Shown here piece by piece: positions 26,131 to 54,480 of a stretch of 64,000 nucleotides of DNA; the first letter of the stretch is position 1; every line of letters begins with the position of its first letter. The notes beneath the pieces were generated by a model. The model was not told where the DNA came from. It saw only the letters and a list, made by a program, of their open reading frames with translations, and ran no database searches. Made by a program: the position numbers and the translations under genes. The DNA comes from Macrostomum lignano (lineage: Eukaryota). The stretch is taken from contig NIVC01000171.1 of the NCBI GenBank assembly GCA_002269645.1, forward strand, positions 1 through 64,000. Direction: 5' to 3'.

Positions 26131-27066
26131 CGATACTCCGATTTTATATGAAAATATTCCTTAAAAAACCAACTACCCGTCCAAATTAAAATGTTTACAG
26201 ATCCCTTGCATGAATTGGAATCCCACACAGCTATTCAATCCAAGCAATAAAAGCGTCGGATTCCATAATGCCCAGATCAGTTACCAATTTTCCGATCTAA
26301 ATTAATCAGCCACAACAGCTACAGGGACAATTTTAAAAGCGGCAAAAACTTCACAGAGAGAATTTCCCATCAGAGCTGTGAAAAAAACCATTATCAAAAG
26401 AGCCTTAGAAATGCCTCTCACACAGGTTTTTAGTAAAAGAGGAAAGAGCTCTTTGATGCACGATTTTGTTTAGCAGTCTCGAAAAAATCGGGACTCTGGA
26501 AACTTCCTGGCGACAGTACAGAAATTCACTTCCGCTTGGCTTGCTTCACCAGAAGAAAGGGGAGTGCTTATGGTTTCTATTGATGTTTAAAAACTAATCC
26601 TAGAGATTATATTTGTACGAGCCCATAATTACTTGATTTTGCATTAAAAAAAGACTATAAATTCCTCTGCACTACTACTTGAAGTAGGCGAGTTCAGACC
26701 TGCGAGAGATCGTTATTTCCTGCTTGATCGTTTTTCGTTGTCCCCAGCTTGAAAACAGCACTACAAGCATTGTTATCGTCATTGCTTCTAATATTTGTTA
26801 AAGTAAACGATCATGAAAACGGATAGATATTTTGTCCGATTTAAATTTAACAGGCACCACACCACAGGCTTGGCTAAGCACGAATTAAAACAAAGTCCAA
26901 CTAATCCAGACATAATGCAGCTAACCAACAGATACTAACGTATTTGAAAGTCGGCAGTCGAGTGCTGTATGGCCAGAGAAAACCGAACCAATTTGACCTG
27001 ACTGGCACACGTTAAGAAACTAAGATCCAGCTTACATCCAAATCAAGAAAACCGAAAACCCACACA

Positions 27067-32345: not shown

Positions 32346-32683
32346 AGTTTAGGGGAGTGGATTCGTTAGGATCGGTAGTGAAGAGATTAAGAAAGACTAA
32401 AGAGATTAAGATTATGAGATTAAAAGATCCTCGAATTTATGAACTGAAGTGCGACTTCTCAGAAGTTTAGGAAGAATATTCAAAGAAGAGGAATTATTGT
32501 GGATCCCGGCTCGAGTCGGAGCCGCTCTCATTGGCTAGCGGGGCTGGCGACTTCCCCTTCCCGCGAATCCCGCTCAGGCCAAACCATCCCCACCACCCCA
32601 ATCTCTGAGCATAAATTTGAGAACTGGCCCAGAAAATCTCAAGCTCCTCTCCTGCTCACTGCTTCCCTTCATCAATCAGTCTC

Positions 32684-32918
32684 ATGGACCAGTCAGACCC
32701 ATTGAGTTCAAGTGCCCTCATCGCCAGAAGCTGCCAGCTGTTGATGCAGCAGCAGTTGTCAGTACCAGGAACCGCGTTATCGAGCTCTTCGAGTGTTGCA
32801 GACTCTGCTTCCAGTTCTGCCGCGGCACTCCTGGAAGAAAATCTGCGCTTCTATCAGCAAGTTGCCGCCGCGGCTGCCTGGTGGCGCCACCAGCTGCAGC
32901 TCGCCGGCGCCGCGATTG
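32684..32918 (+). CDS. scrt: Putative first coding exon of the Scratch gene
   Basis: ATG at 32684; Q/A/S-rich peptide typical of a transcription factor; strong donor G|GTGAGT at 32918/32919 in phase 1, compatible with the phase-1 acceptor at 49579. The linkage across 16.7 kb is inferred. Confidence 0.6.
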
Positions 32919-33900
32919 GTGAGTTTCTTAGAAAATACGACCGGTTTCTTAGAAATTCGTTTGGAAATAAATCATTTTTCTTCAAAAGCCAAGTCGACTT
33001 CTGGGCAAAAATGTTTTTGACATTTCGTTTCTTGGAAAAATCAGTATTTTTTCTTAGAAAAGTTAGCAGGATTTTAAATATTCTTTCTTAGAATTCTGAT
33101 CTTTAAAAATGTGTTTTCTGTCTCTCGTTTCTCGGAAAGTTTTCTGCTTCTTATCTGTTTCCTAAGTCGATTGTTATCCATAAATCTCTTGGAAAATAAA
33201 TTCAGATTTGAATTGTTCACTTTTAAGAATTTTGTCAATTTCTTAAAGTAAACCAAATAGTTTGTCTCTTCAATCTGTGTGGGACATGACAAAGGAGCAA
33301 AGTTTACGCACGAATAACGATTCGAGCAAGAAGCTTTTTGTTAGAGAGGGAAGACACAAAAATAATTAACTCCAAGGACTGCTGTAGGACGAACCTCTCC
33401 CTCGATGTCTCATGTACCAAATAGCAACAGATTTGAAAAAAATAATTTTTTAAACCAAGCTTTATTTAAAACCATCAGAGCAGAACTTGTGCTCAAGATG
33501 GGTGAAGAGATGCCGAGAACAGGGAGGGTTTCACAGACAGCAGCGTGTGGAGGGAGCCAGATGTCACTTTTGTATCCTTATGCCCGCTCAGAGTCATGTT
33601 TTATTATTAGGCATCTCCAATGCTATCATTTGGTGTCATTTTTTTCTCTCCAAAGAAGAAACAATCCTTTGTTCGCTGATGCGAACTCGATGACAGGGGG
33701 GGGGGGAGAAGGGACAGAGAAAGGCAGCCTGACTGTTGCTTGCAGCTGTTCAGTTCTGTAGCAATCAGCTTAGCAACTATATAAGATTTCATTATTTCTA
33801 CCGCCCATGAACAAAGCTATATTTGCACTGATATATATTCAATGCATTGGCTGGAATTGATACCGATAGGTTTATAAAGATCATCCTTAGCACTGTGCTG

Positions 33901-36900
33901 GGTGGCGCTTCTGTTCTGAGTGAATGGCGCTTCTGTTCTGGGTGAATGGCGCTTCTGTTCTGGGTGAATGGCGCTTCTGTTCTGGTGAATGGCGCTTCTG
34001 TTCTGGTGAATGGCGCTTCTGTTCTGGTGAATGGCGCTTCTGTTCTGGGTGAATGGCGCTTCTGTTCTGTGAATGGCGCTTCTGTTCTGGTGAATGGCGC
34101 TTCTGTTCTGGGTGAATGGCGCTTCTGTTCTGGTGAATGGCGCTTCTGTTCTGGTGAATGGCGCTTCTGTTCTGGGTGAATGGCGCTTCTGTTCTGGGTG
34201 AATGGCGCTTCTGTTCTGGTGAATGGCGCTTCTGTTCTGGGTGAATGGCGCTTCTGTTCTGGTGAATGGCGCTTCTGTTCTGGGTGAATGGCGCTTCTGT
34301 TCTGGGTGAATGGCGCTTCTGTTCTGGGTGAATGGCGCTTCTGTTCTGGGTGAATGGCGCTTCTGTTCTGGGTGAATGGCGCTTCTGTTCTGGGTGAATG
34401 GCGCTTCTGTTCTGGGTGAATGGCGCTTCTGTTCTGGGTGAATGGCGCTTCTGTTCTGGGTGAATGGCGCTTCTGTTCTGGGTGAATGGCGCTTCTGTTC
34501 TGGGTGAATGGCGCTTCTGTTCTGGGTGAATGGCGCTTCTGTTCTGGGTGAATGGCGCTTCTGTTCTGGGTGAATGGCGCTTCTGTTCTGGGTGAATGGC
34601 GCTTCTGTTCTGGGTGAATGGCGCTTCTGTTCTGGGTGAATGGCGCTTCTGTTCTGGGTGAATGGCGCTTCTGTTCTGGGTGAATGGCGCTTCTGTTCTG
34701 GGTGAATGGCGCTTCTGTTCTGAGTGAATGGCGCTTCTGTTCTGGGTGAATGGCGCTTCTGTTCTGGTGAATGGCGCTTCTGTTCTGGTGAATGGCGCTT
34801 CTGTTCTGGGTGAATGGCGCTTCTGTTCTGGGTGAATGGCGCTTCTGTTCTGAGTGAATGGCGCTTCTGTTCTGGGTGAATGGCGCTTCTGTTCTGGGTG
34901 AATGGCGCTTCTGTTCTGGGTGAATGGCGCTTCTGTTCTGGTGAATGGCGCTTCTGTTCTGGGTGAATGGCGCTTCTGTTCTGGTGAATGGCGCTTCTGT
35001 TCTGGGTGAATGGCGCTTCTGTTCTGGGTGAATGGCGCTTCTGTTCTGGGTGAATGGCGCTTCTGTTCTGGGTGAATGGCGCTTCTGTTCTGGGTGAATG
35101 GCGCTTCTGTTCTGGGTGAATGGCGCTTCTGTTCTGGGTGAATGGCGCTTCTGTTCTGGGTGAATGGCGCTTCTGTTCTGGGTGAATGGCGCTTCTGTTC
35201 TGGGTGAATGGCGCTTCTGTTCTGGGTGAATGGCGCTTCTGTTCTGGGTGAATGGCGCTTCTGTTCTGGGTGAATGGCGCTTCTGTTCTTCTGGGTGAAT
35301 GGCGCTTCTGTTCTGGGTGAATGGCGCTTCTGTTCTGGGTGAATGGCGCTTCTGTTCTGGTGAATGGCGCTTCTGTTCTGGGTGAATGGCGCTTCTGTTC
35401 TGGTGAATGGCGCTTCTGTTCTGGTGAATGGCGCTTCTGTTCTGGTGAATGGCGCTTCTGTTCTGGTGAATGGCGCTTCTGTTCTGGTGAATGGCGCTTC
35501 TGTTCTGGTGAATGGCGCTTCTGTTCTGGTGAATGGCGCTTCTGTTCTGGGTGAATGGCGCTTCTGTTCTGGTGAATGGCGCTTCTGTTCTGGGTGAATG
35601 GCGCTTCTGTTCTGGGTGAATGGCGCTTCTGTTCTGGTGAATGGCGCTTCTGTTCTGGGTGAATGGCGCTTCTGTTCTGGGTGAATGGCGCTTCTGTTCT
35701 GGTGAATGGCGCTTCTGTTCTGGGTGAATGGCGCTTCTGTTCTGGGTGAATGGCGCTTCTGTTCTGGGTGAATGGCGCTTCTGTTCTGGGTGAATGGCGC
35801 TTCTGTTCTGGTGAATGGCGCTTCTGTTCTGGTGAATGGCGCTTCTGTTCTGGGTGAATGGCGCTTCTGTTCTGAGTGAATGGCGCTTCTGTTCTGGTGA
35901 ATGGCGCTTCTGTTCTGGGTGAATGGCGCTTCTGTTCTGAGTGAATGGCGCTTCTGTTCTGGGTGAATGGCGCTTCTGTTCTGGTGAATGGCGCTTCTGT
36001 TCTGGGTGAATGGCGCTTCTGTTCTGGTGAATGGCGCTTCTGTTCTGGTGAATGGCGCTTCTGTTCTGGTGAATGGCGCTTCTGTTCTGGGTGAATGGCG
36101 CTTCTGTTCTGGGTGAATGGCGCTTCTGTTCTGGGTGAATGGCGCTTCTGTTCTGGGTGAATGGCGCTTCTGTTCTGGGTGAATGGCGCTTCTGTTCTGG
36201 GTGAATGGCGCTTCTGTTCTGGGTGAATGGCGCTTCTGTTCTGGGTGAATGGCGCTTCTGTTCTGGGTGAATGGCGCTTCTGTTCTGGGTGAATGGCGCT
36301 TCTGTTCTGGGTGAATGGCGCTTCTGTTCTGGGTGAATGGCGCTTCTGTTCTGGGTGAATGGCGCTTCTGTTCTGGGTGAATGGCGCTTCTGTTCTGGGT
36401 GAATGGCGCTTCTGTTCTGGGTGAATGGCGCTTCTGTTCTGGGTGAATGGCGCTTCTGTTCTGGGTGAATGGCGCTTCTGTTCTGGGTGAATGGCGCTTC
36501 TGTTCTGGTGAATGGCGCTTCTGTTCTGGTGAATGGCGCTTCTGTTCTGGTGAATGGCGCTTCTGTTCTGGGTGAATGGCGCTTCTGTTCTGGTGAATGG
36601 CGCTTCTGTTCTGGGTGAATGGCGCTTCTGTTCTGGTGAATGGCGCTTCTGTTCTGGGTGAATGGCGCTTCTGTTCTGGGTGAATGGCGCTTCTGTTCTG
36701 GGTGAATGGCGCTTCTGTTCTGGGTGAATGGCGCTTCTGTTCTGGGTGAATGGCGCTTCTGTTCTGGTGAATGGCGCTTCTGTTCTGGGTGAATGGCGCT
36801 TCTGTTCTGGTGAATGGCGCTTCTGTTCTGGGTGAATGGCGCTTCTGTTCTGGGTGAATGGCGCTTCTGTTCTGGGTGAATGGCGCTTCTGTTCTGGTGA

Positions 36901-39900
36901 ATGGCGCTTCTGTTCTGGGTGAATGGCGCTTCTGTTCTGGGTGAATGGCGCTTCTGTTCTGGTGAATGGCGCTTCTGTTCTGGGTGAATGGCGCTTCTGT
37001 TCTGGGTGAATGGCGCTTCTGTTCTGGGTGAATGGCGCTTCTGTTCTGGGTGAATGGCGCTTCTGTTCTGGGTGAATGGCGCTTCTGTTCTGGGTGAATG
37101 GCGCTTCTGTTCTGGGTGAATGGCGCTTCTGTTCTGGGTGAATGGCGCTTCTGTTCTGGTGAATGGCGCTTCTGTTCTGGGTGAATGGCGCTTCTGTTCT
37201 GGTGAATGGCGCTTCTGTTCTGGTGAATGGCGCTTCTGTTCTGGGTGAATGGCGCTTCTGTTCTGGGTGAATGGCGCTTCTGTTCTGGTGAATGGCGCTT
37301 CTGTTCTGGGTGAATGGCGCTTCTGTTCTGGTGAATGGCGCTTCTGTTCTGAGTGAATGGCGCTTCTGTTCTGGTGAATGGCGCTTCTGTTCTGAGTGAA
37401 TGGCGCTTCTGTTCTGAGTGAATGGCGCTTCTGTTCTGGGTGAATGGCGCTTCTGTTCTGGTGAATGGCGCTTCTGTTCTGGTGAATGGCGCTTCTGTTC
37501 TGGTGAATGGCGCTTCTGTTCTGGGTGAATGGCGCTTCTGTTCTGGTGAATGGCGCTTCTGTTCTGGTGAATGGCGCTTCTGTTCTGGGTGAATGGCGCT
37601 TCTGTTCTGGGTGAATGGCGCTTCTGTTCTGGTGAATGGCGCTTCTGTTCTGGGTGAATGGCGCTTCTGTTCTGGGTGAATGGCGCTTCTGTTCTGGGTG
37701 AATGGCGCTTCTGTTCTGGGTGAATGGCGCTTCTGTTCTGGGTGAATGGCGCTTCTGTTCTGGGTGAATGGCGCTTCTGTTCTGGGTGAATGGCGCTTCT
37801 GTTCTGGTGAATGGCGCTTCTGTTCTGGGTGAATGGCGCTTCTGTTCTGGTGAATGGCGCTTCTGTTCTGGGTGAATGGCGCTTCTGTTCTGGGTGAATG
37901 GCGCTTCTGTTCTGGGTGAATGGCGCTTCTGTTCTGGGTGAATGGCGCTTCTGTTCTGGGTGAATGGCGCTTCTGTTCTGGTGAATGGCGCTTCTGTTCT
38001 GGTGAATGGCGCTTCTGTTCTGGTGAATGGCGCTTCTGTTCTGAGTGAATGGCGCTTCTGTTCTGGTGAATGGCGCTTCTGTTCTGGTGAATGGCGCTTC
38101 TGTTCTGGTGAATGGCGCTTCTGTTCTGGTGAATGGCGCTTCTGTTCTGGGTGAATGGCGCTTCTGTTCTGGTGAATGGCGCTTCTGTTCTGGTGAATGG
38201 CGCTTCTGTTCTGGGTGAATGGCGCTTCTGTTCTGGGTGAATGGCGCTTCTGTTCTGGTGAATGGCGCTTCTGTTCTGGGTGAATGGCGCTTCTGTTCTG
38301 GGTGAATGGCGCTTCTGTTCTGGGTGAATGGCGCTTCTGTTCTGGGTGAATGGCGCTTCTGTTCTGGTGAATGGCGCTTCTGTTCTGGGTGAATGGCGCT
38401 TCTGTTCTGGGTGAATGGCGCTTCTGTTCTGGTGAATGGCGCTTCTGTTCTGGGTGAATGGCGCTTCTGTTCTGGGTGAATGGCGCTTCTGTTCTGGGTG
38501 AATGGCGCTTCTGTTCTGGGTGAATGGCGCTTCTGTTCTGGGTGAATGGCGCTTCTGTTCTGGGTGAATGGCGCTTCTGTTCTGGTGAATGGCGCTTCTG
38601 TTCTGGGTGAATGGCGCTTCTGTTCTGGGTGAATGGCGCTTCTGTTCTGGGTGAATGGCGCTTCTGTTCTGGGTGAATGGCGCTTCTGTTCTGGGTGAAT
38701 GGCGCTTCTGTTCTGGTGAATGGCGCTTCTGTTCTGGTGAATGGCGCTTCTGTTCTGGTGAATGGCGCTTCTGTTCTGGTGAATGGCGCTTCTGTTCTGG
38801 TGAATGGCGCTTCTGTTCTGGTGAATGGCGCTTCTGTTCTGAGTGAATGGCGCTTCTGTTCTGGGTGAATGGCGCTTCTGTTCTGGTGAATGGCGCTTCT
38901 GTTCTGGTGAATGGCGCTTCTGTTCTGGTGAATGGCGCTTCTGTTCTGGGTGAATGGCGCTTCTGTTCTGGTGAATGGCGCTTCTGTTCTGGTGAATGGC
39001 GCTTCTGTTCTGGGTGAATGGCGCTTCTGTTCTGGGTGAATGGCGCTTCTGTTCTGGTGAATGGCGCTTCTGTTCTGGTGAATGGCGCTTCTGTTCTGGG
39101 TGAATGGCGCTTCTGTTCTGGTGAATGGCGCTTCTGTTCTGGGTGAATGGCGCTTCTGTTCTGGGTGAATGGCGCTTCTGTTCTGGTGAATGGCGCTTCT
39201 GTTCTGGTGAATGGCGCTTCTGTTCTGGGTGAATGGCGCTTCTGTTCTGAGTGAATGGCGCTTCTGTTCTGGTGAATGGCGCTTCTGTTCTGGTGAATGG
39301 CGCTTCTGTTCTGAGTGAATGGCGCTTCTGTTCTGGGTGAATGGCGCTTCTGTTCTGGTGAATGGCGCTTCTGTTCTGAGTGAATGGCGCTTCTGTTCTG
39401 GGTGAATGGCGCTTCTGTTCTGGTGAATGGCGCTTCTGTTCTGGTGAATGGCGCTTCTGTTCTGGGTGAATGGCGCTTCTGTTCTGGGTGAATGGCGCTT
39501 CTGTTCTGGTGAATGGCGCTTCTGTTCTGGTGAATGGCGCTTCTGTTCTGGGTGAATGGCGCTTCTGTTCTGGGTGAATGGCGCTTCTGTTCTGGGTGAA
39601 TGGCGCTTCTGTTCTGGGTGAATGGCGCTTCTGTTCTGGTGAATGGCGCTTCTGTTCTGGTGAATGGCGCTTCTGTTCTGGGTGAATGGCGCTTCTGTTC
39701 TGGGTGAATGGCGCTTCTGTTCTGGGTGAATGGCGCTTCTGTTCTGGGTGAATGGCGCTTCTGTTCTGGGTGAATGGCGCTTCTGTTCTGGGTGAATGGC
39801 GCTTCTGTTCTGGGTGAATGGCGCTTCTGTTCTGGTGAATGGCGCTTCTGTTCTGGGTGAATGGCGCTTCTGTTCTGGGTGAATGGCGCTTCTGTTCTGG

Positions 39901-42900
39901 TGAATGGCGCTTCTGTTCTGGGTGAATGGCGCTTCTGTTCTGGGTGAATGGCGCTTCTGTTCTGAGTGAATGGCGCTTCTGTTCTGGTGAATGGCGCTTC
40001 TGTTCTGGGTGAATGGCGCTTCTGTTCTGGTGAATGGCGCTTCTGTTCTGGGTGAATGGCGCTTCTGTTCTGGGTGAATGGCGCTTCTGTTCTGGGAGAA
40101 TGGCGCTTCTGTTCTGGGTGAATGGCGCTTCTGTTCTGGGTGAATGGCGCTTCTGTTCTGAGTGAATGGCGCTTCTGTTCTGGTGAATGGCGCTTCTGTT
40201 CTGGTGAATGGCGCTTCTGTTCTGGTGAATGGCGCTTCTGTTCTGGGTGAATGGCGCTTCTGTTCTGGTGAATGGCGCTTCTGTTCTGGTGAATGGCGCT
40301 TCTGTTCTGGTGAATGGCGCTTCTGTTCTGGGTGAATGGCGCTTCTGTTCTGGTGAATGGCGCTTCTGTTCTGGTGAATGGCGCTTCTGTTCTGGGTGAA
40401 TGGCGCTTCTGTTCTGGGTGAATGGCGCTTCTGTTCTGAGTGAATGGCGCTTCTGTTCTGAGTGAATGGCGCTTCTGTTCTGGGTGAATGGCGCTTCTGT
40501 TCTGAGTGAATGGCGCTTCTGTTCTGGGTGAATGGCGCTTCTGTTCTGGGTGAATGGCGCTTCTGTTCTGGGTGAATGGCGCTTCTGTTCTGGTGAATGG
40601 CGCTTCTGTTCTGGTGAATGGCGCTTCTGTTCTGAGTGAATGGCGCTTCTGTTCTGGGTGAATGGCGCTTCTGTTCTGGTGAATGGCGCTTCTGTTCTGG
40701 TGAATGGCGCTTCTGTTCTGGGTGAATGGCGCTTCTGTTCTGGTGAATGGCGCTTCTGTTCTGGTGAATGGCGCTTCTGTTCTGGTGAATGGCGCTTCTG
40801 TTCTGGGTGAATGGCGCTTCTGTTCTGGTGAATGGCGCTTCTGTTCTGGTGAATGGCGCTTCTGTTCTGGGTGAATGGCGCTTCTGTTCTGGGTGAATGG
40901 CGCTTCTGTTCTGGTGAATGGCGCTTCTGTTCTGGGTGAATGGCGCTTCTGTTCTGGGTGAATGGCGCTTCTGTTCTGGGTGAATGGCGCTTCTGTTCTG
41001 GGTGAATGGCGCTTCTGTTCTGGGTGAATGGCGCTTCTGTTCTGGGTGAATGGCGCTTCTGTTCTGGGTGAATGGCGCTTCTGTTCTGGGTGAATGGCGC
41101 TTCTGTTCTGGGTGAATGGCGCTTCTGTTCTGGGTGAATGGCGCTTCTGTTCTGGGTGAATGGCGCTTCTGTTCTGGGTGAATGGCGCTTCTGTTCTGGG
41201 TGAATGGCGCTTCTGTTCTGGGTGAATGGCGCTTCTGTTCTGGGTGAATGGCGCTTCTGTTCTGGTGAATGGCGCTTCTGTTCTGGTGAATGGCGCTTCT
41301 GTTCTGGTGAATGGCGCTTCTGTTCTGGTGAATGGCGCTTCTGTTCTGGTGAATGGCGCTTCTGTTCTGGGTGAATGGCGCTTCTGTTCTGGTGAATGGC
41401 GCTTCTGTTCTGGTGAATGGCGCTTCTGTTCTGGGTGAATGGCGCTTCTGTTCTGGGTGAATGGCGCTTCTGTTCTGGGTGAATGGCGCTTCTGTTCTGG
41501 GTGAATGGCGCTTCTGTTCTGGGTGAATGGCGCTTCTGTTCTGGTGAATGGCGCTTCTGTTCTGGTGAATGGCGCTTCTGTTCTGGTGAATGGCGCTTCT
41601 GTTCTGGGTGAATGGCGCTTCTGTTCTGGTGAATGGCGCTTCTGTTCTGGGTGAATGGCGCTTCTGTTCTGGGTGAATGGCGCTTCTGTTCTGGTGAATG
41701 GCGCTTCTGTTCTGGGTGAATGGCGCTTCTGTTCTGGGTGAATGGCGCTTCTGTTCTGGGTGAATGGCGCTTCTGTTCTGGGTGAATGGCGCTTCTGTTC
41801 TGGGTGAATGGCGCTTCTGTTCTGGGTGAATGGCGCTTCTGTTCTGGGTGAATGGCGCTTCTGTTCTGGGTGAATGGCGCTTCTGTTCTGGGTGAATGGC
41901 GCTTCTGTTCTGGGTGAATGGCGCTTCTGTTCTGGGTGAATGGCGCTTCTGTTCTGGTGAATGGCGCTTCTGTTCTGGGTGAATGGCGCTTCTGTTCTGG
42001 GTGAATGGCGCTTCTGTTCTGGGTGAATGGCGCTTCTGTTCTGGTGAATGGCGCTTCTGTTCTGGGTGAATGGCGCTTCTGTTCTGAGTGAATGGCGCTT
42101 CTGTTCTGGGTGAATGGCGCTTCTGTTCTGGTGAATGGCGCTTCTGTTCTGGTGAATGGCGCTTCTGTTCTGGGTGAATGGCGCTTCTGTTCTGGTGAAT
42201 GGCGCTTCTGTTCTGAGTGAATGGCGCTTCTGTTCTGGGTGAATGGCGCTTCTGTTCTGGTGAATGGCGCTTCTGTTCTGGTGAATGGCGCTTCTGTTCT
42301 GGGTGAATGGCGCTTCTGTTCTGGGTGAATGGCGCTTCTGTTCTGGTGAATGGCGCTTCTGTTCTGGTGAATGGCGCTTCTGTTCTGGGTGAATGGCGCT
42401 TCTGTTCTGGTGAATGGCGCTTCTGTTCTGGTGAATGGCGCTTCTGTTCTGGGTGAATGGCGCTTCTGTTCTGGGTGAATGGCGCTTCTGTTCTGGGTGA
42501 ATGGCGCTTCTGTTCTGGGTGAATGGCGCTTCTGTTCTGGGTGAATGGCGCTTCTGTTCTGGGTGAATGGCGCTTCTGTTCTGGGTGAATGGCGCTTCTG
42601 TTCTGGTGAATGGCGCTTCTGTTCTGGGTGAATGGCGCTTCTGTTCTGGTGAATGGCGCTTCTGTTCTGGTGAATGGCGCTTCTGTTCTGGGTGAATGGC
42701 GCTTCTGTTCTGGGTGAATGGCGCTTCTGTTCTGGGTGAATGGCGCTTCTGTTCTGGGTGAATGGCGCTTCTGTTCTGAGTGAATGGCGCTTCTGTTCTG
42801 GGTGAATGGCGCTTCTGTTCTGGTGAATGGCGCTTCTGTTCTGGGTGAATGGCGCTTCTGTTCTGGTGAATGGCGCTTCTGTTCTGGTGAATGGCGCTTC

Positions 42901-45900
42901 TGTTCTGAGTGAATGGCGCTTCTGTTCTGGTGAATGGCGCTTCTGTTCTGGGTGAATGGCGCTTCTGTTCTGGTGAATGGCGCTTCTGTTCTGGTGAATG
43001 GCGCTTCTGTTCTGGTGAATGGCGCTTCTGTTCTGGTGAATGGCGCTTCTGTTCTGGTGAATGGCGCTTCTGTTCTGGGTGAATGGCGCTTCTGTTCTGG
43101 GTGAATGGCGCTTCTGTTCTGGGTGAATGGCGCTTCTGTTCTGGGTGAATGGCGCTTCTGTTCTGGGTGAATGGCGCTTCTGTTCTGGTGAATGGCGCTT
43201 CTGTTCTGGGTGAATGGCGCTTCTGTTCTGGTGAATGGCGCTTCTGTTCTGGGTGAATGGCGCTTCTGTTCTGGGTGAATGGCGCTTCTGTTCTGGGTGA
43301 ATGGCGCTTCTGTTCTGGGTGAATGGCGCTTCTGTTCTGGGTGAATGGCGCTTCTGTTCTGGGTGAATGGCGCTTCTGTTCTGGTGAATGGCGCTTCTGT
43401 TCTGGGTGAATGGCGCTTCTGTTCTGGGTGAATGGCGCTTCTGTTCTGAGTGAATGGCGCTTCTGTTCTGGGTGAATGGCGCTTCTGTTCTGGGTGAATG
43501 GCGCTTCTGTTCTGGGTGAATGGCGCTTCTGTTCTGGTGAATGGCGCTTCTGTTCTGGGTGAATGGCGCTTCTGTTCTGGTGAATGGCGCTTCTGTTCTG
43601 GGTGAATGGCGCTTCTGTTCTGGTGAATGGCGCTTCTGTTCTGAGTGAATGGCGCTTCTGTTCTGGGTGAATGGCGCTTCTGTTCTGGTGAATGGCGCTT
43701 CTGTTCTGAGTGAATGGCGCTTCTGTTCTGGGTGAATGGCGCTTCTGTTCTGGGTGAATGGCGCTTCTGTTCTGGTGAATGGCGCTTCTGTTCTGGGTGA
43801 ATGGCGCTTCTGTTCTGGGTGAATGGCGCTTCTGTTCTGGGTGAATGGCGCTTCTGTTCTGAGTGAATGGCGCTTCTGTTCTGGGTGAATGGCGCTTCTG
43901 TTCTGGGTGAATGGCGCTTCTGTTCTGGTGAATGGCGCTTCTGTTCTGGGTGAATGGCGCTTCTGTTCTGGGTGAATGGCGCTTCTGTTCTGGGTGAATG
44001 GCGCTTCTGTTCTGGGTGAATGGCGCTTCTGTTCTGGTGAATGGCGCTTCTGTTCTGGTGAATGGCGCTTCTGTTCTGGGTGAATGGCGCTTCTGTTCTG
44101 GTGAATGGCGCTTCTGTTCTGAGTGAATGGCGCTTCTGTTCTGGGTGAATGGCGCTTCTGTTCTGGTGAATGGCGCTTCTGTTCTGGTGAATGGCGCTTC
44201 TGTTCTGGGTGAATGGCGCTTCTGTTCTGGTGAATGGCGCTTCTGTTCTGGTGAATGGCGCTTCTGTTCTGGGTGAATGGCGCTTCTGTTCTGGGTGAAT
44301 GGCGCTTCTGTTCTGGTGAATGGCGCTTCTGTTCTGGTGAATGGCGCTTCTGTTCTGGGTGAATGGCGCTTCTGTTCTGGTGAATGGCGCTTCTGTTCTG
44401 GGTGAATGGCGCTTCTGTTCTGGGTGAATGGCGCTTCTGTTCTGGTGAATGGCGCTTCTGTTCTGGGTGAATGGCGCTTCTGTTCTGGGTGAATGGCGCT
44501 TCTGTTCTGGGTGAATGGCGCTTCTGTTCTGGGTGAATGGCGCTTCTGTTCTGGTGAATGGCGCTTCTGTTCTGGTGAATGGCGCTTCTGTTCTGGGTGA
44601 ATGGCGCTTCTGTTCTGGGTGAATGGCGCTTCTGTTCTGAGTGAATGGCGCTTCTGTTCTGGGTGAATGGCGCTTCTGTTCTGGGTGAATGGCGCTTCTG
44701 TTCTGGGTGAATGGCGCTTCTGTTCTGGGTGAATGGCGCTTCTGTTCTGGGTGAATGGCGCTTCTGTTCTGGTGAATGGCGCTTCTGTTCTGGGTGAATG
44801 GCGCTTCTGTTCTGGTGAATGGCGCTTCTGTTCTGAGTGAATGGCGCTTCTGTTCTGGGTGAATGGCGCTTCTGTTCTGGTGAATGGCGCTTCTGTTCTG
44901 AGTGAATGGCGCTTCTGTTCTGGGTGAATGGCGCTTCTGTTCTGGGTGAATGGCGCTTCTGTTCTGGTGAATGGCGCTTCTGTTCTGGGTGAATGGCGCT
45001 TCTGTTCTGGGTGAATGGCGCTTCTGTTCTGGTGAATGGCGCTTCTGTTCTGGTGAATGGCGCTTCTGTTCTGGGTGAATGGCGCTTCTGTTCTGGGTGA
45101 ATGGCGCTTCTGTTCTGGTGAATGGCGCTTCTGTTCTGGGTGAATGGCGCTTCTGTTCTGGGTGAATGGCGCTTCTGTTCTGGTGAATGGCGCTTCTGTT
45201 CTGGTGAATGGCGCTTCTGTTCTGGTGAATGGCGCTTCTGTTCTGGTGAATGGCGCTTCTGTTCTGGGTGAATGGCGCTTCTGTTCTGGTGAATGGCGCT
45301 TCTGTTCTGGTGAATGGCGCTTCTGTTCTGGGTGAATGGCGCTTCTGTTCTGGTGAATGGCGCTTCTGTTCTGGTGAATGGCGCTTCTGTTCTGGGTGAA
45401 TGGCGCTTCTGTTCTGGGTGAATGGCGCTTCTGTTCTGGTGAATGGCGCTTCTGTTCTGGGTGAATGGCGCTTCTGTTCTGGGTGAATGGCGCTTCTGTT
45501 CTGGTGAATGGCGCTTCTGTTCTGGTGAATGGCGCTTCTGTTCTGGGTGAATGGCGCTTCTGTTCTGGGTGAATGGCGCTTCTGTTCTGGGTGAATGGCG
45601 CTTCTGTTCTGGGTGAATGGCGCTTCTGTTCTGGTGAATGGCGCTTCTGTTCTGGGTGAATGGCGCTTCTGTTCTGGTGAATGGCGCTTCTGTTCTGGTG
45701 AATGGCGCTTCTGTTCTGGGTGAATGGCGCTTCTGTTCTGGGTGAATGGCGCTTCTGTTCTGGTGAATGGCGCTTCTGTTCTGGGTGAATGGCGCTTCTG
45801 TTCTGGGTGAATGGCGCTTCTGTTCTGGGTGAATGGCGCTTCTGTTCTGGTGAATGGCGCTTCTGTTCTGGGTGAATGGCGCTTCTGTTCTGGGTGAATG

Positions 45901-48900
45901 GCGCTTCTGTTCTGGTGAATGGCGCTTCTGTTCTGGGTGAATGGCGCTTCTGTTCTGGGTGAATGGCGCTTCTGTTCTGGTGAATGGCGCTTCTGTTCTG
46001 GGTGAATGGCGCTTCTGTTCTGGGTGAATGGCGCTTCTGTTCTGGGTGAATGGCGCTTCTGTTCTGGGTGAATGGCGCTTCTGTTCTGGGTGAATGGCGC
46101 TTCTGTTCTGGGTGAATGGCGCTTCTGTTCTGGGTGAATGGCGCTTCTGTTCTGGTGAATGGCGCTTCTGTTCTGGTGAATGGCGCTTCTGTTCTGGGTG
46201 AATGGCGCTTCTGTTCTGGGTGAATGGCGCTTCTGTTCTGAGTGAATGGCGCTTCTGTTCTGGGTGAATGGCGCTTCTGTTCTGGGTGAATGGCGCTTCT
46301 GTTCTGGTGAATGGCGCTTCTGTTCTGGGTGAATGGCGCTTCTGTTCTGGGTGAATGGCGCTTCTGTTCTGAGTGAATGGCGCTTCTGTTCTGGGTGAAT
46401 GGCGCTTCTGTTCTGGGTGAATGGCGCTTCTGTTCTGGTGAATGGCGCTTCTGTTCTGGTGAATGGCGCTTCTGTTCTGGGTGAATGGCGCTTCTGTTCT
46501 GGTGAATGGCGCTTCTGTTCTGGTGAATGGCGCTTCTGTTCTGGTGAATGGCGCTTCTGTTCTGAGTGAATGGCGCTTCTGTTCTGGGTGAATGGCGCTT
46601 CTGTTCTGGGTGAATGGCGCTTCTGTTCTGGTGAATGGCGCTTCTGTTCTGGGTGAATGGCGCTTCTGTTCTGGGTGAATGGCGCTTCTGTTCTGGGTGA
46701 ATGGCGCTTCTGTTCTGGTGAATGGCGCTTCTGTTCTGGGTGAATGGCGCTTCTGTTCTGGGTGAATGGCGCTTCTGTTCTGAGTGAATGGCGCTTCTGT
46801 TCTGGGTGAATGGCGCTTCTGTTCTGGGTGAATGGCGCTTCTGTTCTGGGTGAATGGCGCTTCTGTTCTGGGTGAATGGCGCTTCTGTTCTGGGAATGGC
46901 GCTTCTGTTCTGAGTGAATGGCGCTTCTGTTCTGGGTGAATGGCGCTTCTGTTCTGGTGAATGGCGCTTCTGTTCTGAGTGAATGGCGCTTCTGTTCTGG
47001 GTGAATGGCGCTTCTGTTCTGGTGAATGGCGCTTCTGTTCTGAGTGAATGGCGCTTCTGTTCTGGGTGAATGGCGCTTCTGTTCTGGTGAATGGCGCTTC
47101 TGTTCTGAGTGAATGGCGCTTCTGTTCTGGGTGAATGGCGCTTCTGTTCTGGGTGAATGGCGCTTCTGTTCTGGGTGAATGGCGCTTCTGTTCTGGGTGA
47201 ATGGCGCTTCTGTTCTGGGTGAATGGCGCTTCTGTTCTGGTGAATGGCGCTTCTGTTCTGGGTGAATGGCGCTTCTGTTCTGGGTGAATGGCGCTTCTGT
47301 TCTGGGTGAATGGCGCTTCTGTTCTGGGTGAATGGCGCTTCTGTTCTGGGTGAATGGCGCTTCTGTTCTGGGTGAATGGCGCTTCTGTTCTGGGTGAATG
47401 GCGCTTCTGTTCTGGGTGAATGGCGCTTCTGTTCTGGTGAATGGCGCTTCTGTTCTGGGTGAATGGCGCTTCTGTTCTGGGTGAATGGCGCTTCTGTTCT
47501 GGTGAATGGCGCTTCTGTTCTGGGTGAATGGCGCTTCTGTTCTGGGTGAATGGCGCTTCTGTTCTGGGAGAATGGCGCTTCTGTTCTGGGTGAATGGCGC
47601 TTCTGTTCTGGGCGAATGGCGCTTCTGTGCTGAGTGAATGGCGCTTCTGTTCTGGGCGAATGGCGCTTCTGTGCTGAGTGAATGGCGCTTCTGTTCTGGT
47701 GAATGGCGCTTCTGTTCTGGGTGAATGGCGCTTCTGTTCTGGTGAATGGCGCTTCTGTTCTGAGTGAATGGCGCTTCTGTTCTGGGTGAATGGCGCTTCT
47801 GTTCTGGGTGAATGGCGCTTCTGTTCTGGTGAATGGCGCTTCTGTTCTGGGTGAATGGCGCTTCTGTTCTGGGTGAATGGCGCTTCTGTTCTGGTGAATG
47901 GCGCTTCTGTTCTGGTGAATGGCGCTTCTGTTCTGGGTGAATGGCGCTTCTGTTCTGGGTGAATGGCGCTTCTGTTCTGGTGAATGGCGCTTCTGTTCTG
48001 GGTGAATGGCGCTTCTGTTCTGGGTGAATGGCGCTTCTGTTCTGGGTGAATGGCGCTTCTGTTCTGGGTGAATGGCGCTTCTGTTCTGGGCGAATGGCGC
48101 TTCTGTGCTGAGTGAATGGCGCTTCTGTTCTGGGTGAATGGCGCTTCTGTTCTGAGTGAATGGCGCTTCTGTTCTGAGTGAATGGCGCTTCTGTTCTGGG
48201 TGAATGGCGCTTCTGTTCTGGTGAATGGCGCTTCTGTTCTGAGTGAATGGCGCTTCTGTTCTGGGTGAATGGCGCTTCTGTTCTGGGTGAATGGCGCTTC
48301 TGTTCTGGTGAATGGCGCTTCTGTTCTGGTGAATGGCGCTTCTGTTCTGGGTGAATGGCGCTTCTGTTCTGGGTGAATGGCGCTTCTGTTCTGAGTGAAT
48401 GGCGCTTCTGTTCTGGGTGAATGGCGCTTCTGTTCTGGGTGAATGGCGCTTCTGTTCTGGGTGAATGGCGCTTCTGTTCTGGGTGAATGGCGCTTCTGTT
48501 CTGGGTGAATGGCGCTTCTGTTCTGGGTGAATGGCGCTTCTGTTCTGGGTGAATGGCGCTTCTGTTCTGGTGAATGGCGCTTCTGTTCTGGGTGAATGGC
48601 GCTTCTGTTCTGGGTGAATGGCGCTTCTGTTCTGAGTGAATGGCGCTTCTGTTCTGGGTGAATGGCGCTTCTGTTCTGGGTGAATGGCGCTTCTGTTCTG
48701 GGAGAATGGCGCTTCTGTTCTGGTGAATGGCGCTTCTGTTCTGGGAATGGCGCTTCTGTCTGAGTGAATGGCGCTTCTGTTCTGGGGAATGGCGCTTCTG
48801 TGCTGAGTGAATGGCGCTTCTGTTCTGAGTGAATGGCGCTTCTGTTCTGGGTGAATGGCGCTTCTGTTCTGAGTGAATGGCGCTTCTGTTCTGAGTGAAT

Positions 48901-49523
48901 GGCGCTTCTGTTCTGGGTGAATGGCGCTTCTGTTCTGGGTGAATGGCGCTTCTGTTCTGAGTGAATGGCGCTTCTGTTCTGGGTGAATGGCGCTTCTGTT
49001 CTGGGTGAATGGCGCTTCTGTTCTGGGTGAATGGCGCTTCTGTTCTGGTGAATGGCGCTTCTGTTCTGGGTGAATGGCGCTTCTGTTCTGGGTGAATGGC
49101 GCTTCTGTTCTGGTGAATGGCGCTTCTGTTCTGGTGAATGGCGCTTCTGTTCTGGGTGAATGGCGCTTCTGTTCTGGTGAATGGCGCTTCTGTTCTGGGT
49201 GAATGGCGCTTCTGTTCTGGGTGAATGGCGCTTCTGTTCTGGGTGAATGGCGCTTCTGTTCTGGGTGAATGGCGCTTCTGTTCTGGGTGAATGGCGCTTC
49301 TGTTCTGGGTGAATGGCGCTTCTGTTCTGAGTGAATGGCGCTTCTGTTCTGGGTGAATGGCGCTTCTGTTCTGGGTGAATGGCGCTTCTGTTCTGAGTGA
49401 ATGGCGCTTCTGTTCTGGGTGAATGGCGCTTCTGTTCTGGGAGAATGGCGCTTCTGTTCTGGGAGAATGGCGCTTCTGTTCTGAGTGAATGGCGCTTCTG
49501 TTCTGGGTGAATGGCGCTTCTGT
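33901..49523. repeat. 15.6-kb satellite of 21/22-bp units GAATGGCGCTTCTGTTCTG(G/GG/AG)T, roughly 720 copies
   Basis: Read directly; three main unit variants (CTGGTGAA, CTGGGTGAA, CTGAGTGAA). Copy number is length divided by about 21.7. Confidence 0.99.
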
Positions 49524-49578
49524 GCCGAGAGGCGCTGTAATGTTAAACAAATCTGTACTATAAATCTACTCCCCGCAG

Positions 49579-50094
49579 GCTCTTATCCGATCGCAACGAA
49601 AGACTGGCAGACACCGCAGCTTCGGGCGCTTCAGCATCTGCCGCAGCCGCAGGCGCCGCCGCAGGAGCAGCCTCCGCCTTCATCAGCAGCGAAGGAGCTC
49701 CTGGCAGATGACGACAGCCAGCCGAGCTCCACAGTCAGGTACACCATCGACGCCTTCTTGGCTAGCGACGGTCGCTCCTCCCGACGTGTCGGCAGCGGCG
49801 CTGGGCGGCCGCCGAAGTCGCCGACAAAGGAGGCGAGCCGGGCCAGCCGGTTCGAGTGCTCGGACTGCGGCCGGAGCTACGCCACCTCCAGCAACCTCAG
49901 CCGGCACCGCCAGACGCATCGGAGTCTCGACAGTCAGGGAGCTCGGCGCTGCCAGCACTGCGGCAAGGCCTACGTGTCCATGCCGGCCCTGGCGATGCAC
50001 CTGATGACGCACAGCCTGAAGCACCGCTGCCACGTGTGCGGCAAGTCCTTCAGCCGGCCCTGGTTACTGAGCGGCCACCTCAGGGCTCACACCG
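49579..50094 (+). CDS. scrt: Scratch-family (Snail superfamily) C2H2 zinc-finger factor, exon 2
   Basis: Acceptor ccccgcag|GC. Scratch-domain-like YTIDAFLASDGRS; fingers CSDCGRSYATSSNLSRHRQTH, CQHCGKAYVSMPALAMHLMTH and CHVCGKSFSRPWLLSGHLRAH closely match SCRT1/2 fingers as I recall them. Donor G|GTGAGG. Confidence 0.93.
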
Positions 50095-50116
50095 GTGAGG
50101 AGAGCAGCCCGGCCTG

Positions 50117-51555
50117 AATCTGTGTATCTATAGATCTAGACACTGTTTATCTATATATCTAGACACTGTGTATCTATAGATCTAGACAGAGTGTTTTTAT
50201 AAATCTAGACACTGTGTATCTATAGATCTAGTCAGAGTGTATTTATAAATCTAGACACTGTGTATCTATAGATCTAGTCAGAGTGTATTTATAAATCTAG
50301 ACACTGTGTATCTATAGATCTAGACAGAGTGTATTTATAAATCTAGACACTGTGTATCTATAGATCTAGTCAGAGTGTATTTATAAATCTAGACACTGGG
50401 TATCTATAAATCTAGACACTGTGTATCTATAGATCTAGACACTGTGTATCTATCGATCTAGACACTGTGTATCTATAGATCTAGACAGAGTGTATTTATA
50501 AATCTAGACACTGTGTATCTATAGATCTAGTCAGAGTGTATTCATAAATCTAGACACTGGGTATCTATAAATCTAGACACTGTGTATCTATAGATCTAGA
50601 CACTGTGTATCTATCGATCTAGACACTGTGTATCTATAGATCTAGACAGAGTGTATTTATAAATCTAGACACTGTGTATCTATAGATCTAGTCAGAGTGT
50701 ATTCATAAATCTAGACACTGGGTATCTATAAATCTAGACACTGTGTATCTATAGATCTAGACACTGTGTATCTATCGATCTAGACACTGTGTATCTATAG
50801 ATCTAGACGTTGTGTATCTATAGATCTAGACACTGTGTATCTATAGATCTAGACACTGTGTATCTATAGATCTAGACAGAGTGTATTTATAAATCTAGAC
50901 ACTGTGTATCTATAGATCTAGTCAGAGTGTATTTATAAATCTAGACACTGGGTATCTATAAATCTAGACACTGTGTATCTATAGATCTAGACAGAGTGTA
51001 TTTATAAATCTAGACACTGTGTATCTATAGATCTAGACACTGTGTATCTATAGATCTAGACACTGTGTATCTATAGATCTAGACACTGTGTATCTATAGA
51101 TCTAGACACTGTGTATCTATAGATCTAGACACTGTGTATCTATAGATCTAGACACTGTGTATCTATAGATCTAGACACTGTGTATCTATAGATCTAGACA
51201 CTGTGTATCTATAGATCTAGACACTGTGTATCTATAGATCTAGACACTGTGTATCTATAGATCTAGACACTGTGTATCTATAGATCTAGACACTGTATAT
51301 CTATATATCTAGACACCGTGTATCCATATATCCTAGATACAGTGCACCTATAGATCTAGACACAGTGTACCTATAGATCTAGACACTATGCATCTATAGA
51401 TCTAGATACACGATACCTGATACAGTGAATATATTTTTCTAGCCATGTATATATAGATTTAGATACTATGCATCTATAGATCTAAATATTATAGACATGT
51501 ATCTATCCAGCATCTATAGATCTATACAATGTTTTTGAGCCTTAGACACGCCTTA
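50117..51555. repeat. 23-bp minisatellite CACTGTGTATCTATAGATCTAGA with variants, about 60 copies, filling Scratch intron 2
   Basis: Read directly. Confidence 0.96.
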
Positions 51556-51673
51556 GATCTATAGATCCATAGAAAGTGCATTCACAGATCCAGCTAGAGA
51601 TAACTCTCTAGCGCTGAAATCCCTAGACATCTCCAGACGCATCTACAGACCGTCTCGAACTCTCAACCAACAG

Positions 51674-51888
51674 GCGAAAAACCTTTCGGATGTGCGCACT
51701 GCGGCCGCGCATTCGCCGACCGGTCCAACCTGCGCGCGCACATGCAGACCCACACCGGTGAGAGGCAGCACCGGTGCCACAGGTGCGGCCGGGGCTTCGC
51801 ACTGCGCGCCTATCTTAGCAAGCACCTGGAGTCCCGGGCCTGCTGCAGGGGCGAGGCTGAGAAAGCGATGAAAGTTGAAACAGTGTGA
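51674..51888 (+). CDS. scrt: Scratch gene, last exon (fingers 4-5)
   Basis: Acceptor caaccaacag|GC gives GEKPFGCAHCGRAFADRSNLRAHMQTH..CHRCGRGFALRAYLSKHLESRAC. Stop TGA at 51886-51888. The three exons total 966 nt = 321 aa. Confidence 0.93.
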
Positions 51889-51973: not shown

Positions 51974-51979
51974 AATAAA
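51974..51979 (+). terminator. Candidate polyadenylation signal (AATAAA) of Scratch
   Basis: First AATAAA, 86 nt after the stop codon; position only. Confidence 0.5.
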
Positions 51980-52195: not shown

Positions 52196-52610
52196 ACCCT
52201 CTCTCTGACTCTCCCCCTCTCTGACTCTCCCCCTCTCTGACTATCCCCCACTCTGACTCTCACCCTCTCTCTGACTCTCAACCTCTCTCTGACTCTCAAC
52301 CTCTCTCTGACTCTCACCCTCTCTGACTCACCCTCTCTCTGACTCTCACCCTCTCTCTGACTCTCACCATCTCTCTGACTCTCACCCTCTCTCTGACTTT
52401 CACCCTCTCTCTGACTCTCACCCTCTCTCTGACTCTCACCCTCTCTCTGACTCTCACCCTCTCTCTGACTCTCACCCTCTCTCCGACTCTCACCCTCTCT
52501 CTGACTCCCACCCTGTCTCTCTGATTCTCATTATGTCATTCCCTCTTTGATTCTTACCCTCTCTAACAATTAACCTCTTTATCTGACTCTCACTACTCTC
52601 TCTCAGATTT
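52196..52610 (+). repeat. 18-bp array (CTCTCACCCTCTCTCTGA)n, pyrimidine strand on +
   Basis: Reverse complement of the arrays at 52940-53400 and 53903-54480. Confidence 0.92.
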
Positions 52611-52624
52611 CGACAATTCAAGCC

Positions 52625-52705
52625 TGTAGGCCGGTGGTCCTTGTGAAGTTTCTGGCCTGCCAATTTTACTGTCCCGATTTGAGTGGTCGTCGGTTCGAGT
52701 TCCGT
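52625..52705 (+). other. Degenerate tRNA-like / pol III promoter-like segment (possible SINE head)
   Basis: A-box-like TAGGCCGGTGG near 52626 and B-box-like GGTTCGAGTTCC near 52692; no convincing cloverleaf. Confidence 0.25.
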
Positions 52706-52939
52706 GACGGCGGCCGGTCACCGGACATGATGAGGGCGCCATCACACCAGGTTTAGTCCTGTCAGATCAGAGCTTGCCGCCTCGTGGAACCAGTTGGCTA
52801 GCAGTTACCCATTTTTTATGCCGGACAATGAGTGACTCAAGGTGACCTTGAGCCAAAATCTGGACTGCCATCTCCCCACAAAACCGACACATTGACAGAC
52901 TACAAGGGTTATGAGGCAGAAAGGTAGCCAGAGAGCGAG

Positions 52940-53400
52940 AGGGTAAGACTTGGAGAGTGGGGGTAATCAGAGAAGGGTGAGAGTCAGAGAGAGGGTGAGA
53001 GTCAGAGAGAGGCTGAGAGTCAGAGAGAGGGTGAGAGCAGAGAGAGGGTGAGAGTCAGAGGGGGTGAGAGTCAAAGGGGGTGGGAGTCAGAGGGGGTGAC
53101 AATCAGAGAGAGGGTGAGAGTCAGAGAGAGGGTGAGATTTAGAGAGGGTGACAGTCAGAGAGAGTGAGAGTCATAGAGAGGGTGAGAGTCAGAGGGGGTG
53201 AGAGTCAGAGAGAGGCTGAGAGTCAGAGAGAGGCTGAGAGTCAGAGAGAGGCTGAGAGTCAGAAGGGGTGAGAGTCAGAGTGGGTGAGAGTCAGAGAGAG
53301 GCTGAGAGTCAGAGAGAGGCTGAGAGTCAGAAGGGGTGAGAGTCAGAGGGGTGAGAGTCAGAGAGGGTGAAAGTCGGAGAGGGGTGACAGTCAGAGACAG
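52940..53400 (-). repeat. 18-bp array (TCAGAGAGAGGGTGAGAG)n, inverted relative to 52196-52610
   Basis: Read directly. Confidence 0.92.
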
Positions 53401-53902
53401 TCAGCTTCAGTCTGAACTGAGCTGAGAAGACTTGGCACTCCAATCCAGATTCTGCTTCACGGCCTCCTCTACTGATCAATCTCTGCCCTCATGTTCAAAT
53501 TTCACCGAATAAAAACGGAACAGAAAACAAAGTGGGGATCTTCATGGGAAATTCGATGCCAATGCCCACTGCGTACCGACTCTGATGGGGCGCGTGTTGA
53601 CCCCTGTTGTTGCGCAATCGAGCAAGCAACCCATCGATCTTGGCGCAAAATCTTTTTGAGAGACGGAGCAGCTTTTTGCGTCTGAGACGGCTGGGATTGA
53701 CAGCCAGATGAGCGACTGCGGTTAGACAGAGAGGCGGCCTGGGGCGAAACAAATTCTATAAAAATGAATTGAGATGCCGGTTGTGAAGACAGAAAAGGTT
53801 GATAATTCCAAGATTAAGAGCGATGGATGCGGGGGAGAGTCTGAGTGCCCTCGAGCATAAGAGGAAGGGGTGGGTGTCGAAGAGCTGAGATCAGGGTTGA
53901 AT

Positions 53903-54480
53903 TCAGTGAGAGTGGGTGAGATTCAGAGAGAGGGTGAGAGTCAGAGAGAGGGTGAGAGTCAGAGAGAGGGTGAGAATCAGAGAGAGGGTGAGAATCAGAG
54001 GGAGGTTGAGAGTCAGAGAGAGGGTGAGAGTCAGAGCAAGGGTGAGAATCAGAGAGAGAGGGTGAGAGTCAGAGAGAGGGTGAGAGTCAGAAAGAGGGTG
54101 AGAATCAAAGAGAGGCTGAGAGTCAGAGAGAGGGTGAGAATCAGAGAGAGGGTGAGAGTCAGAGAGAAGGTGAGAGTCAGAGAGAGGCTGAGAGTCACAG
54201 AGGCTGAGAGTCAGAGAGAGAGTGAGAGTCAGAGAGAGGGTGAGAGTCAGAAAGAGGGTGAGAATCAAAGAGAGGCTGAGAGTCAGAGAGAGGGTGAGAA
54301 TAAGAGAGAGGGTGATGTCAAAGAGAGGCTGAGAGTCAGAGAGAGTGTGAGAGTCACAGAGGCTGAGAGTCAGAGAAAGGGTGAGAATCAAAGAGAGGGT
54401 GAGAATCAAAGAGAGGGTGAGAGTGAAAGAGATCGAGAGAGTCAGTCAGGGGGTGAGAGTCAGAGAGTGTGAGAGTCAGA
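53903..54480 (-). repeat. Third array of the same 18-bp family
   Basis: Same unit and orientation as 52940-53400. Confidence 0.92.

Follow-up and report, generated by a model that had tools for sequence, protein, structure and literature searches.

The 64-kb window analyzed here, bases 1–64000 of the 89,793 bp contig NIVC01000171.1 of Macrostomum lignano (assembly Mlig_3_7, GCA_002269645.1), contains a gene whose predicted product belongs to the Scratch group of zinc finger repressors, and upstream of the finger-encoding exons of this gene lies one very large tandem array of a 21/22 bp unit. The assembly was made with Canu v1.4 from 2015 PacBio continuous long reads (CLR) at 130x and was polished by Pilon with short reads mapped with Bowtie2 (PMC5730564). 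The array and the parts of the gene, in window coordinates and with the kind of evidence in parentheses, are as follows.

33903–49523, + strand: tandem array, ~720 units of 21/22 bp, consensus TGGCGCTTCTGTTCTGGGTGAA (Tandem Repeats Finder, unit splitting)
32684–32918, + strand: candidate coding exon 1, from ATG to ATTG, then GTGAGT; 78 codons plus 1 nt (open reading frame, donor)
32919–49578, + strand: intron 1 in the cis-splicing model, 16,660 bp, 93.8% array (splice signals, frame)
49579–50094, + strand: coding exon 2, Scratch domain and zinc fingers 1–3 (open reading frame, homology)
50095–51673, + strand: intron 2, 1,579 bp (gene model)
51674–51888, + strand: coding exon 3, zinc fingers 4–5 and TGA stop (open reading frame, homology)
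51974–51979, + strand: AATAAA, 86 nt past the stop codon, likely poly(A) signal (motif)

Tandem Repeats Finder places the 15,621 bp array at 33903–49523 with period 22, 720.5 copies, 97% matches and 1% indels. The exact 11-mer GGCGCTTCTGT is present in every unit, and when the array is split on it there are 721 anchors; an earlier note on this DNA had counted about 720 copies of one 21/22 bp unit, and that count was thus reproduced. The spacing between anchors is 22 bp in 488 cases, 21 bp in 228, 20 bp in three and 25 bp in one, and odd units are rare (of 720, four are neither 21 nor 22 bp long and two are odd 21 bp forms). Only 11 distinct unit variants occur, among them a GGG form (424 units), the 21 bp GG form (226 units) and a GAG form (52 units). 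Substitutions in the 22 bp units amount to 68 of 10,736 bases (0.6%) and fall at three variable positions; otherwise the units differ by the one-base change in a G run that gives the 21 bp unit and by a few rare indel variants. This is a tandem satellite or minisatellite in the plain sense of the term, head-to-tail copies of one unit with high identity, and the near-identity of the units indicates recent expansion or turnover, not long-term conservation. The plus strand is 37% T, 35% G, 18% C and 10% A (72% G+T). The two strands thus differ markedly in composition (GC skew +0.31, AT skew −0.59), and the G-rich one is the non-template strand of the gene. Each unit has one CpG, and the CpG observed/expected ratio is 0.71.

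The unit variants are not arranged at random along the array. Their order makes 281 runs where 311 ± 11 are expected, and there is a periodicity of three units, both when all variants are considered (lag-3 autocorrelation 0.59 vs 0.45, z = 9) and when the GG form is scored against the rest (z = 5). Locally this takes the form of (C-A-b)n blocks in which the 21 bp form recurs in phase with a substitution variant, and it points to local higher-order duplication of ~65 bp. A three-unit periodicity of the 21 bp units would not arise from random error, a sign that the GG/GGG differences are mostly genuine and not errors of the consensus. The rare unit variants are concentrated in the last 2 kb of the array, and both of its edges are degenerate partial units. 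No terminal inverted repeats, target-site duplications or duplicated flanks were found at the array's borders, and no further copies of the unit (≤3 mismatches in 22) occur in the remaining 48 kb of the window; a transposon origin of the array was rejected on these grounds.

The array lies in surroundings that are themselves very rich in tandem repeats. Simple and tandem repeats make up 15% of the M. lignano assembly, and the mean intron in this species is 1.1 kb (PMC5730564). Tandem repeats occupy 52% of the 64-kb window, and 37% when the big array is excluded. These dozens of arrays, several of which lie between exons, belong to 22 unrelated families with units of 10–51 bp, among which no common core motif was found beyond chance. 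Intron 2 of the Scratch gene is itself 81% filled by an unrelated 23 bp array (50120–51406), and other arrays lie between the receptor open reading frame (ORF) fragments described below; arrays between exons are thus normal in this window. What is unusual about the big array is its size, since at 15.6 kb it is 11x the next largest (1.4 kb) and 28x the window's median array length (561 bp), and it is also far more homogeneous than the other arrays there. In these two respects it departs from the general repeat load of the genome to which it belongs (PMC5730564). The window as a whole is an extreme example of that load, and at present the locus chiefly shows how far a known property of the M. 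lignano genome can go. No paper on satellites within M. lignano genes, or on its Scratch genes, was found in the literature searched.

The three coding exons total 235 + 516 + 215 = 966 nt, in agreement with the 966 coding nt of the earlier note, and the frame closes to give a product of 321 amino acids. Its best database matches are Scratch proteins of insects, a flatworm and others (56–68% identity). A Scratch domain, YTIDAFLASDGRSSRR, is present upstream of the fingers and aligns with YTFDAFFVSDGRSRKR in the M. lignano Scratch protein and with YTYEAFFVSDGRSKK in others; it is followed by five zinc fingers, four of them C2H2 by pattern and the terminal one C2HC (Pfam zf-C2H2, 2.3e-26), in a region that aligns along its length with Scratch proteins. 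The best matches, the domain and the five fingers together bear out the earlier identification of the gene as Scratch. Identity is only 56% to the M. lignano "Transcriptional repressor scratch 1" (A0A1I8I524) and 60–68% to insect Scratch, so by its sequence the gene is a genuine, diverged Scratch paralog with intact fingers. The "neural" role that the earlier note gave it follows from membership in the Scratch family and is putative for this gene.

The predicted protein thus resembles the Scratch subfamily of the Snail superfamily of C2H2 repressors in its Scratch domain and in its five fingers, of which the terminal one is of the C2HC type, and it differs from that subfamily at its N-terminus. 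The gene model has no SNAG (MPR...) start, and the SNAG motif (MPR..x.K; MPRSFLVKK or MPRCLMAKK) was not found in six frames of the whole window; 48 of the 120 Scratch matches begin with MPRCLMAKK. The M. lignano Scratch paralog likewise lacks a SNAG start, and the motif may be dispensable in the M. lignano lineage. The N-terminal 169 amino acids (exon 1 plus the region before the fingers) have no homolog at E ≤ 10. In exact look-ups, neither the 321-amino acid model nor the exon 2 ORF was on record in the protein collection. Exon 2 contains no in-frame ATG before finger 2, and a stop lies upstream at 49482–49484, so the start codon must come from farther upstream or from a spliced leader. Annotation is sparse across the repeat-dense scaffold NIVC01000171.1; in its first 18 kb NCBI annotates only one gene, though receptor ORFs are also present there. 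A conserved developmental regulator is absent from the transcriptome-based annotation of M. lignano, and its repeat-filled gene structure or low expression are possible causes.

Further signals, from just upstream of the candidate first exon to the 5′ part of exon 2, are as follows.

32598–32616, + strand: CCAAT (32598) and ATAAAT (32611), 68–86 nt 5′ of the candidate ATG; promoter-like only (motif match)
32925–33137, + strand: six TTCTNRGAA palindromes, starting 7 nt past the candidate donor (motif count)
49559–49634, + strand: elements of a trans-splicing model, TATAAA at 49559–49564 and in-frame CAG acceptors ending at 49610 and 49634 (motifs)

The earlier note had placed the array inside the first intron of the gene. 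Its arithmetic was reproduced, in that the array makes up 93.8% of the 16,660 bp interval 32919–49578 and ends 55 nt before the AG. The donor G^GTGAGT (the caret marks the splice point) fits the M. lignano donor motif GT[G/A]AG (PMC8629364), and the acceptor ctactccccgCAG^G, with a pyrimidine tract and CAG (ccccgCAG^G), is the best in the region. The junction is in phase 1 on both sides and keeps the 966-nt frame. Exon 1 is the only non-repeat candidate with an ATG-initiated ORF and a donor in the 5.2 kb upstream, and GC content drops at its donor from about 60% to about 30% (60% in the exon, 37.5% in the sequence beyond the donor). The CCAAT and ATAAAT matches 5′ of its ATG also count in its favor. 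Isoform P0041 of the M. lignano Scratch paralog is built in the same way, in that its first coding exon is short, starts with MD and is joined just before an LQxLP motif, and a weak colinear match (PGTALSSSSS/PSTPLASSSS; post hoc p = 0.03) lies at the same offset from the first Met in exon 1 and in the paralog.

Several points weigh against this placement. Candidates that combine a right-phase ATG-initiated ORF with a GT[AG]AG donor number two in the 5.2 kb, where ~1.25 are expected by chance (an estimate). Exon 1 has no significant homolog, local BLAST against the 120 Scratch proteins giving low-complexity noise only. Its codon score, from log-odds trained on 1,248 codons of the window, is unremarkable, in that the three frames give similar values and 20% of random segments reach as high a one. 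The paralog has its exon boundary at a position that aligns closer to 49611 than to 49579. Finally, no transcript-derived protein of at least ~125 amino acids is on record for the gene, which is missing from the transcriptome-based annotation. The earlier claim thus stands with respect to splice signals and frame, but exon 1 (32684–32918) was not confirmed as a real exon. With these points counted, it is plausible and somewhat more likely than not, from the splice signals and reading frame, that the array is intronic and lies within a 16.7-kb first intron removed by cis-splicing.

Two database versions of the paralog, P0040 and P0041, are set apart by a block of 141 residues ending immediately before EVTEELQQLP, and the exon boundary which this implies aligns with an in-frame CAG^ at 49610, 32 nt downstream of the 49578 acceptor.

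On balance we lean toward the view that the array is a locally amplified minisatellite, grown to satellite size, and a neutral or slightly costly passenger in the first intron of the gene; most probably it is an outsized member of the tandem repeats with which the M. lignano genome abounds, and not a regulatory device. Replication slippage and unequal exchange would have expanded it in place, between a short and poorly conserved 5′ coding exon (32684–32918) and the acceptor at 49578; these processes would keep the units homogeneous and leave the short three-unit higher-order blocks. If transcribed with the gene, it would form ~81% of a ~19-kb primary transcript and be removed with the intron. 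The sense strand of the array contains no GT[AG]AG, no CAG, no TAG and no AATAAA or ATTAAA, and lacking any consensus donor, CAG/TAG acceptor or poly(A) signal it could be tolerated and transcribed without the creation of new splice or poly(A) sites. The same strand has 720 ATGs, so the array would have to be removed for the mRNA to be translated, and under the cis-splicing model none of these AUGs would reach the mRNA.

Such a passenger could be predicted only to lengthen transcription by a few minutes and perhaps to hinder RNA polymerase somewhat on the GC-skewed template. From general RNA polymerase II elongation rates, 15.6 kb is estimated to add 4–10 minutes, a small delay beside M. lignano development, which takes days; it is also small in comparison with the introns of more than 100 kb that occur elsewhere. 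The GC-skewed, G+T-rich sense strand could favor R-loops. The predicted structure of the array RNA is weak (z = −2.35, with an empty centroid), and an Rfam scan of the whole window gave no match. It tells against the passenger view that neutrality enters it as the default assumption.

A different 5′ end for the gene is offered by spliced-leader trans-splicing, to which 30–39% of M. lignano genes are subject (PMC5730564, PMC8629364; 38.8% in PMC5730564), and in which a 35 nt leader ending in ATG is joined at acceptors of the motif [T/C]TNCAG (PMC8629364). The array would then not be intronic; the Scratch mRNA would receive its 5′ end and its AUG from the leader at the in-frame acceptor 49610 or 49634, and the array would be an outron or part of the 5′ flanking or promoter region, with transcription starting from the TATAAA at 49559, 36 nt past the array end, or from far upstream. 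It is because M. lignano trans-splices a leader ending in AUG that a gene without intron 1 has to be considered, and with the leader AUG the protein could be complete, Scratch domain and every finger included, without any need for an exon 1 that neither homology nor codon statistics support. CTTCAG^CAT, ending at 49634, is in frame and matches the trans-splice acceptor motif, and CAG^ACA, which ends at 49610, is also in frame and falls no more than one residue from where the paralog exon boundary aligns. Both, however, have poor pyrimidine tracts (0.31–0.54), and a transcription start near 49590 would leave an outron of merely 20–45 nt. At the best acceptor (49578) a leader AUG would be out of frame, yet this acceptor is in phase with the exon 1 donor, which favors cis-splicing there; and a transcript begun 5′ of exon 1 would contain a consensus donor in cis, which should likewise favor cis-splicing (a rule cited in PMC8629364). 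None of the nine protein versions that a leader AUG would give is on record in the protein collection. We therefore regard trans-splicing downstream of the array as rather doubtful. A misrepresentation of the genome by the assembly, in which the array length was inflated or collapsed, the GG/GGG consensus is in error, or two loci were joined through the same satellite, is a distinct concern. It too counts against the view we favor that a short-read polish of a PacBio CLR/Canu draft is untrustworthy inside a 15-kb satellite with 0.6% substitutions, and the authors of the assembly blamed repeats for the difficulty of assembling this genome (PMC5730564); moreover, the main unit variant is a one-base difference in a G run, the kind that PacBio CLR consensus gets wrong. 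On the other hand, the window contains no gap (no N), odd-length units are as rare as noted above, and the 21 bp units have a significant three-unit periodicity and recur in step with a substitution variant. No order of variants is duplicated over a long block (20 consensus units in a row make up the longest repeated string), and variant frequencies drift gradually along the array without an abrupt switch, so neither assembler looping nor a chimeric join is indicated; at 130x coverage, spanning reads are plausible. An artefactual array is accordingly thought unlikely. The minus strand of the array also has an ORF of 5,250 codons (33798–49550) that runs through the whole array and might be read as a gene for a giant repetitive protein. 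No frame of the unit's reverse complement contains a stop triplet, and all frames are therefore open by construction; the minus strand of the array has no ATG, and 228 units of 21 bp shift its frame. A 220-amino acid sample of the translation found no homolog among 5.8 billion proteins, a search that is a poor proxy for the presence of the satellite elsewhere in the genome. The giant protein was rejected as next to inconceivable, although gene finders could miscall this ORF.

A remaining alternative gives the array a function, as a selected regulatory element of Scratch. It might serve as a transcriptional delay tuned by its length, as the source of a repeat RNA to which proteins specific for pyrimidine tracts, YGCY or UGU attach, as a place where heterochromatin or Polycomb nucleates, or as a set of ~720 transcription factor sites. 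The array is a size outlier even in its own window, it lies 55 nt from an acceptor of a developmental regulator, and its strand asymmetry is strong and its CpG content regular, as described above. Each unit also contains ATGGCG, which we take to resemble (and no more than resemble) the core of YY1/Pho-type sites. In humans there is the precedent of the tandem repeat in CACNA1C intron 3, variation in which is linked to expression (PMC11118589). Against this, the surrounding genome yields such arrays by the dozen with unrelated units, and the intronic arrays in neighboring genes speak for an origin by mutation and not for the sake of a function. A delay of minutes is set against development over days, the predicted RNA structure is weak and without an Rfam match, and 0.6% substitutions between units speak for recent expansion or turnover rather than long-term conservation. 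Selection of the array as a regulatory element is thus improbable. Still less credence is given to the more specific proposal that it is a functional, length-variable cis-element that sets when and where the repressor is made, with copy-number differences between lines tuning neural development, which we consider very improbable; the routes by which such an element might be read, namely an R-loop-prone GC skew, motifs (ATGGCG in DNA; CGCU and UGUU in RNA) and chromatin nucleation, are hypothetical. The repeat-rich context likewise makes the ideas of an RNA sponge, of heterochromatin and of a tunable delay less likely.

A locally amplified passenger minisatellite, the reading preferred here, can be set beside several known systems. 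The human intronic expansions FXN GAA, C9orf72 GGGGCC, ATXN10 ATTCT and CNBP CCTG have units of 3–6 bp and cause disease; they can impede transcription, form R-loops and sequester RNA-binding proteins, and it is mechanisms of this kind that the earlier note had invoked. Unlike at those loci, nothing at the M. lignano array indicates toxicity, RNA foci or silencing. The Y-linked Drosophila genes kl-2, kl-3 and kl-5 have gigantic introns filled with satellite (Fingerhut et al. 2019, PMC6508621), and the M. lignano intron would resemble them in that satellite makes up most of it (here 94%) and would be transcribed with the gene. The Drosophila introns, however, span megabases, consist of 5–7 bp satellites, lie on a heterochromatic Y and are expressed by a dedicated spermatocyte program, whereas here a 15.6-kb array of a 22 bp unit lies in a gene-bearing neighborhood and its transcription is presumed; at 16.66 kb, the modeled intron is ~100x smaller than those of the megabase class. 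The array in human CACNA1C intron 3, with a 30 bp unit and a length of 5.7 kb (median) to 61 kb (PMC11118589), is likewise a multi-kilobase minisatellite with a strong consensus and few unit variants in an intron of a neuronal gene. It shows internal duplications, it forms a small part of a 328-kb intron, and its polymorphism and link to expression are documented (PMC11118589). The units of the M. lignano array are more uniform (11 variants, as against 158 in CACNA1C). If the intron model holds, the locus offers a compact and tractable satellite-dominated intron, in which a ~1.1-kb mRNA would be made from a transcript that is ~81% one repeat. M. lignano has working transgenesis and public long-read and RNA-seq data, and deletion of the array could then test whether it is inert, slows the polymerase or carries chromatin marks.

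Other genes and elements of the window are described briefly here. A leucine-rich-repeat ORF on the minus strand (7605–8393) is identical to an NCBI protein encoded at the same scaffold coordinates. Fragments of a rhodopsin-type receptor ORF (10775–11335, ~18166–18530 and 21548–21952) are separated by stretches that contain repeat arrays and a Ty3/gypsy-type long terminal repeat (LTR) retrotransposon. The latter occupies 11356–18111, between the receptor fragments, with a gag-pol ORF at 12660–16832, and each of its LTRs carries an array of ~1 kb with 27 bp units. The non-repeat parts of the two LTRs (12574–12784 and 16956–17166) are 100% identical, so the insertion is young.

An ORF resembling an MFS/organic cation transporter (27065–28672) is 92% identical to two M. 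lignano proteins, and is a pseudogene: beside the intact M. lignano genes Mlig025194 g1 and g2, it has an in-frame stop and a 2 bp deletion at 27930. The intact copies match it over the coding region only, at 92.6% nucleotide identity, and do not share its flanks. An attempt to find the orthologous Scratch locus by synteny with the transporter failed, the window copy being a pseudogene paralog with unshared flanks.

The TTCTNRGAA palindromes just past the candidate donor of exon 1 are mostly TTTCTTAGAAA, that is, the TTCNNNGAA type of site bound by STAT factors. Both strands together have 21 matches where 6.7 are expected, and six of the 15 distinct sites in the 64 kb lie within those 213 bp; they may represent a regulatory cluster within the intron or the remains of a minisatellite. 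Farther to the right, on the minus strand, an adhesion-type receptor gene (7tm_2 and GPS) has within its C-terminal ORF an array of 48 copies of a 21 bp unit (59854–60870), which is in frame (seven codons) and may encode a repetitive tail of SESVRDV/SESDRNV. Between this gene and Scratch, just past the 3′ end of the latter, three arrays of an 18 bp family, ACCCTCTCTCTGACTCTC, lie at 52196–54480, and the first of them is inverted with respect to the other two, which makes a large imperfect inverted repeat with its arms ~440 bp apart.

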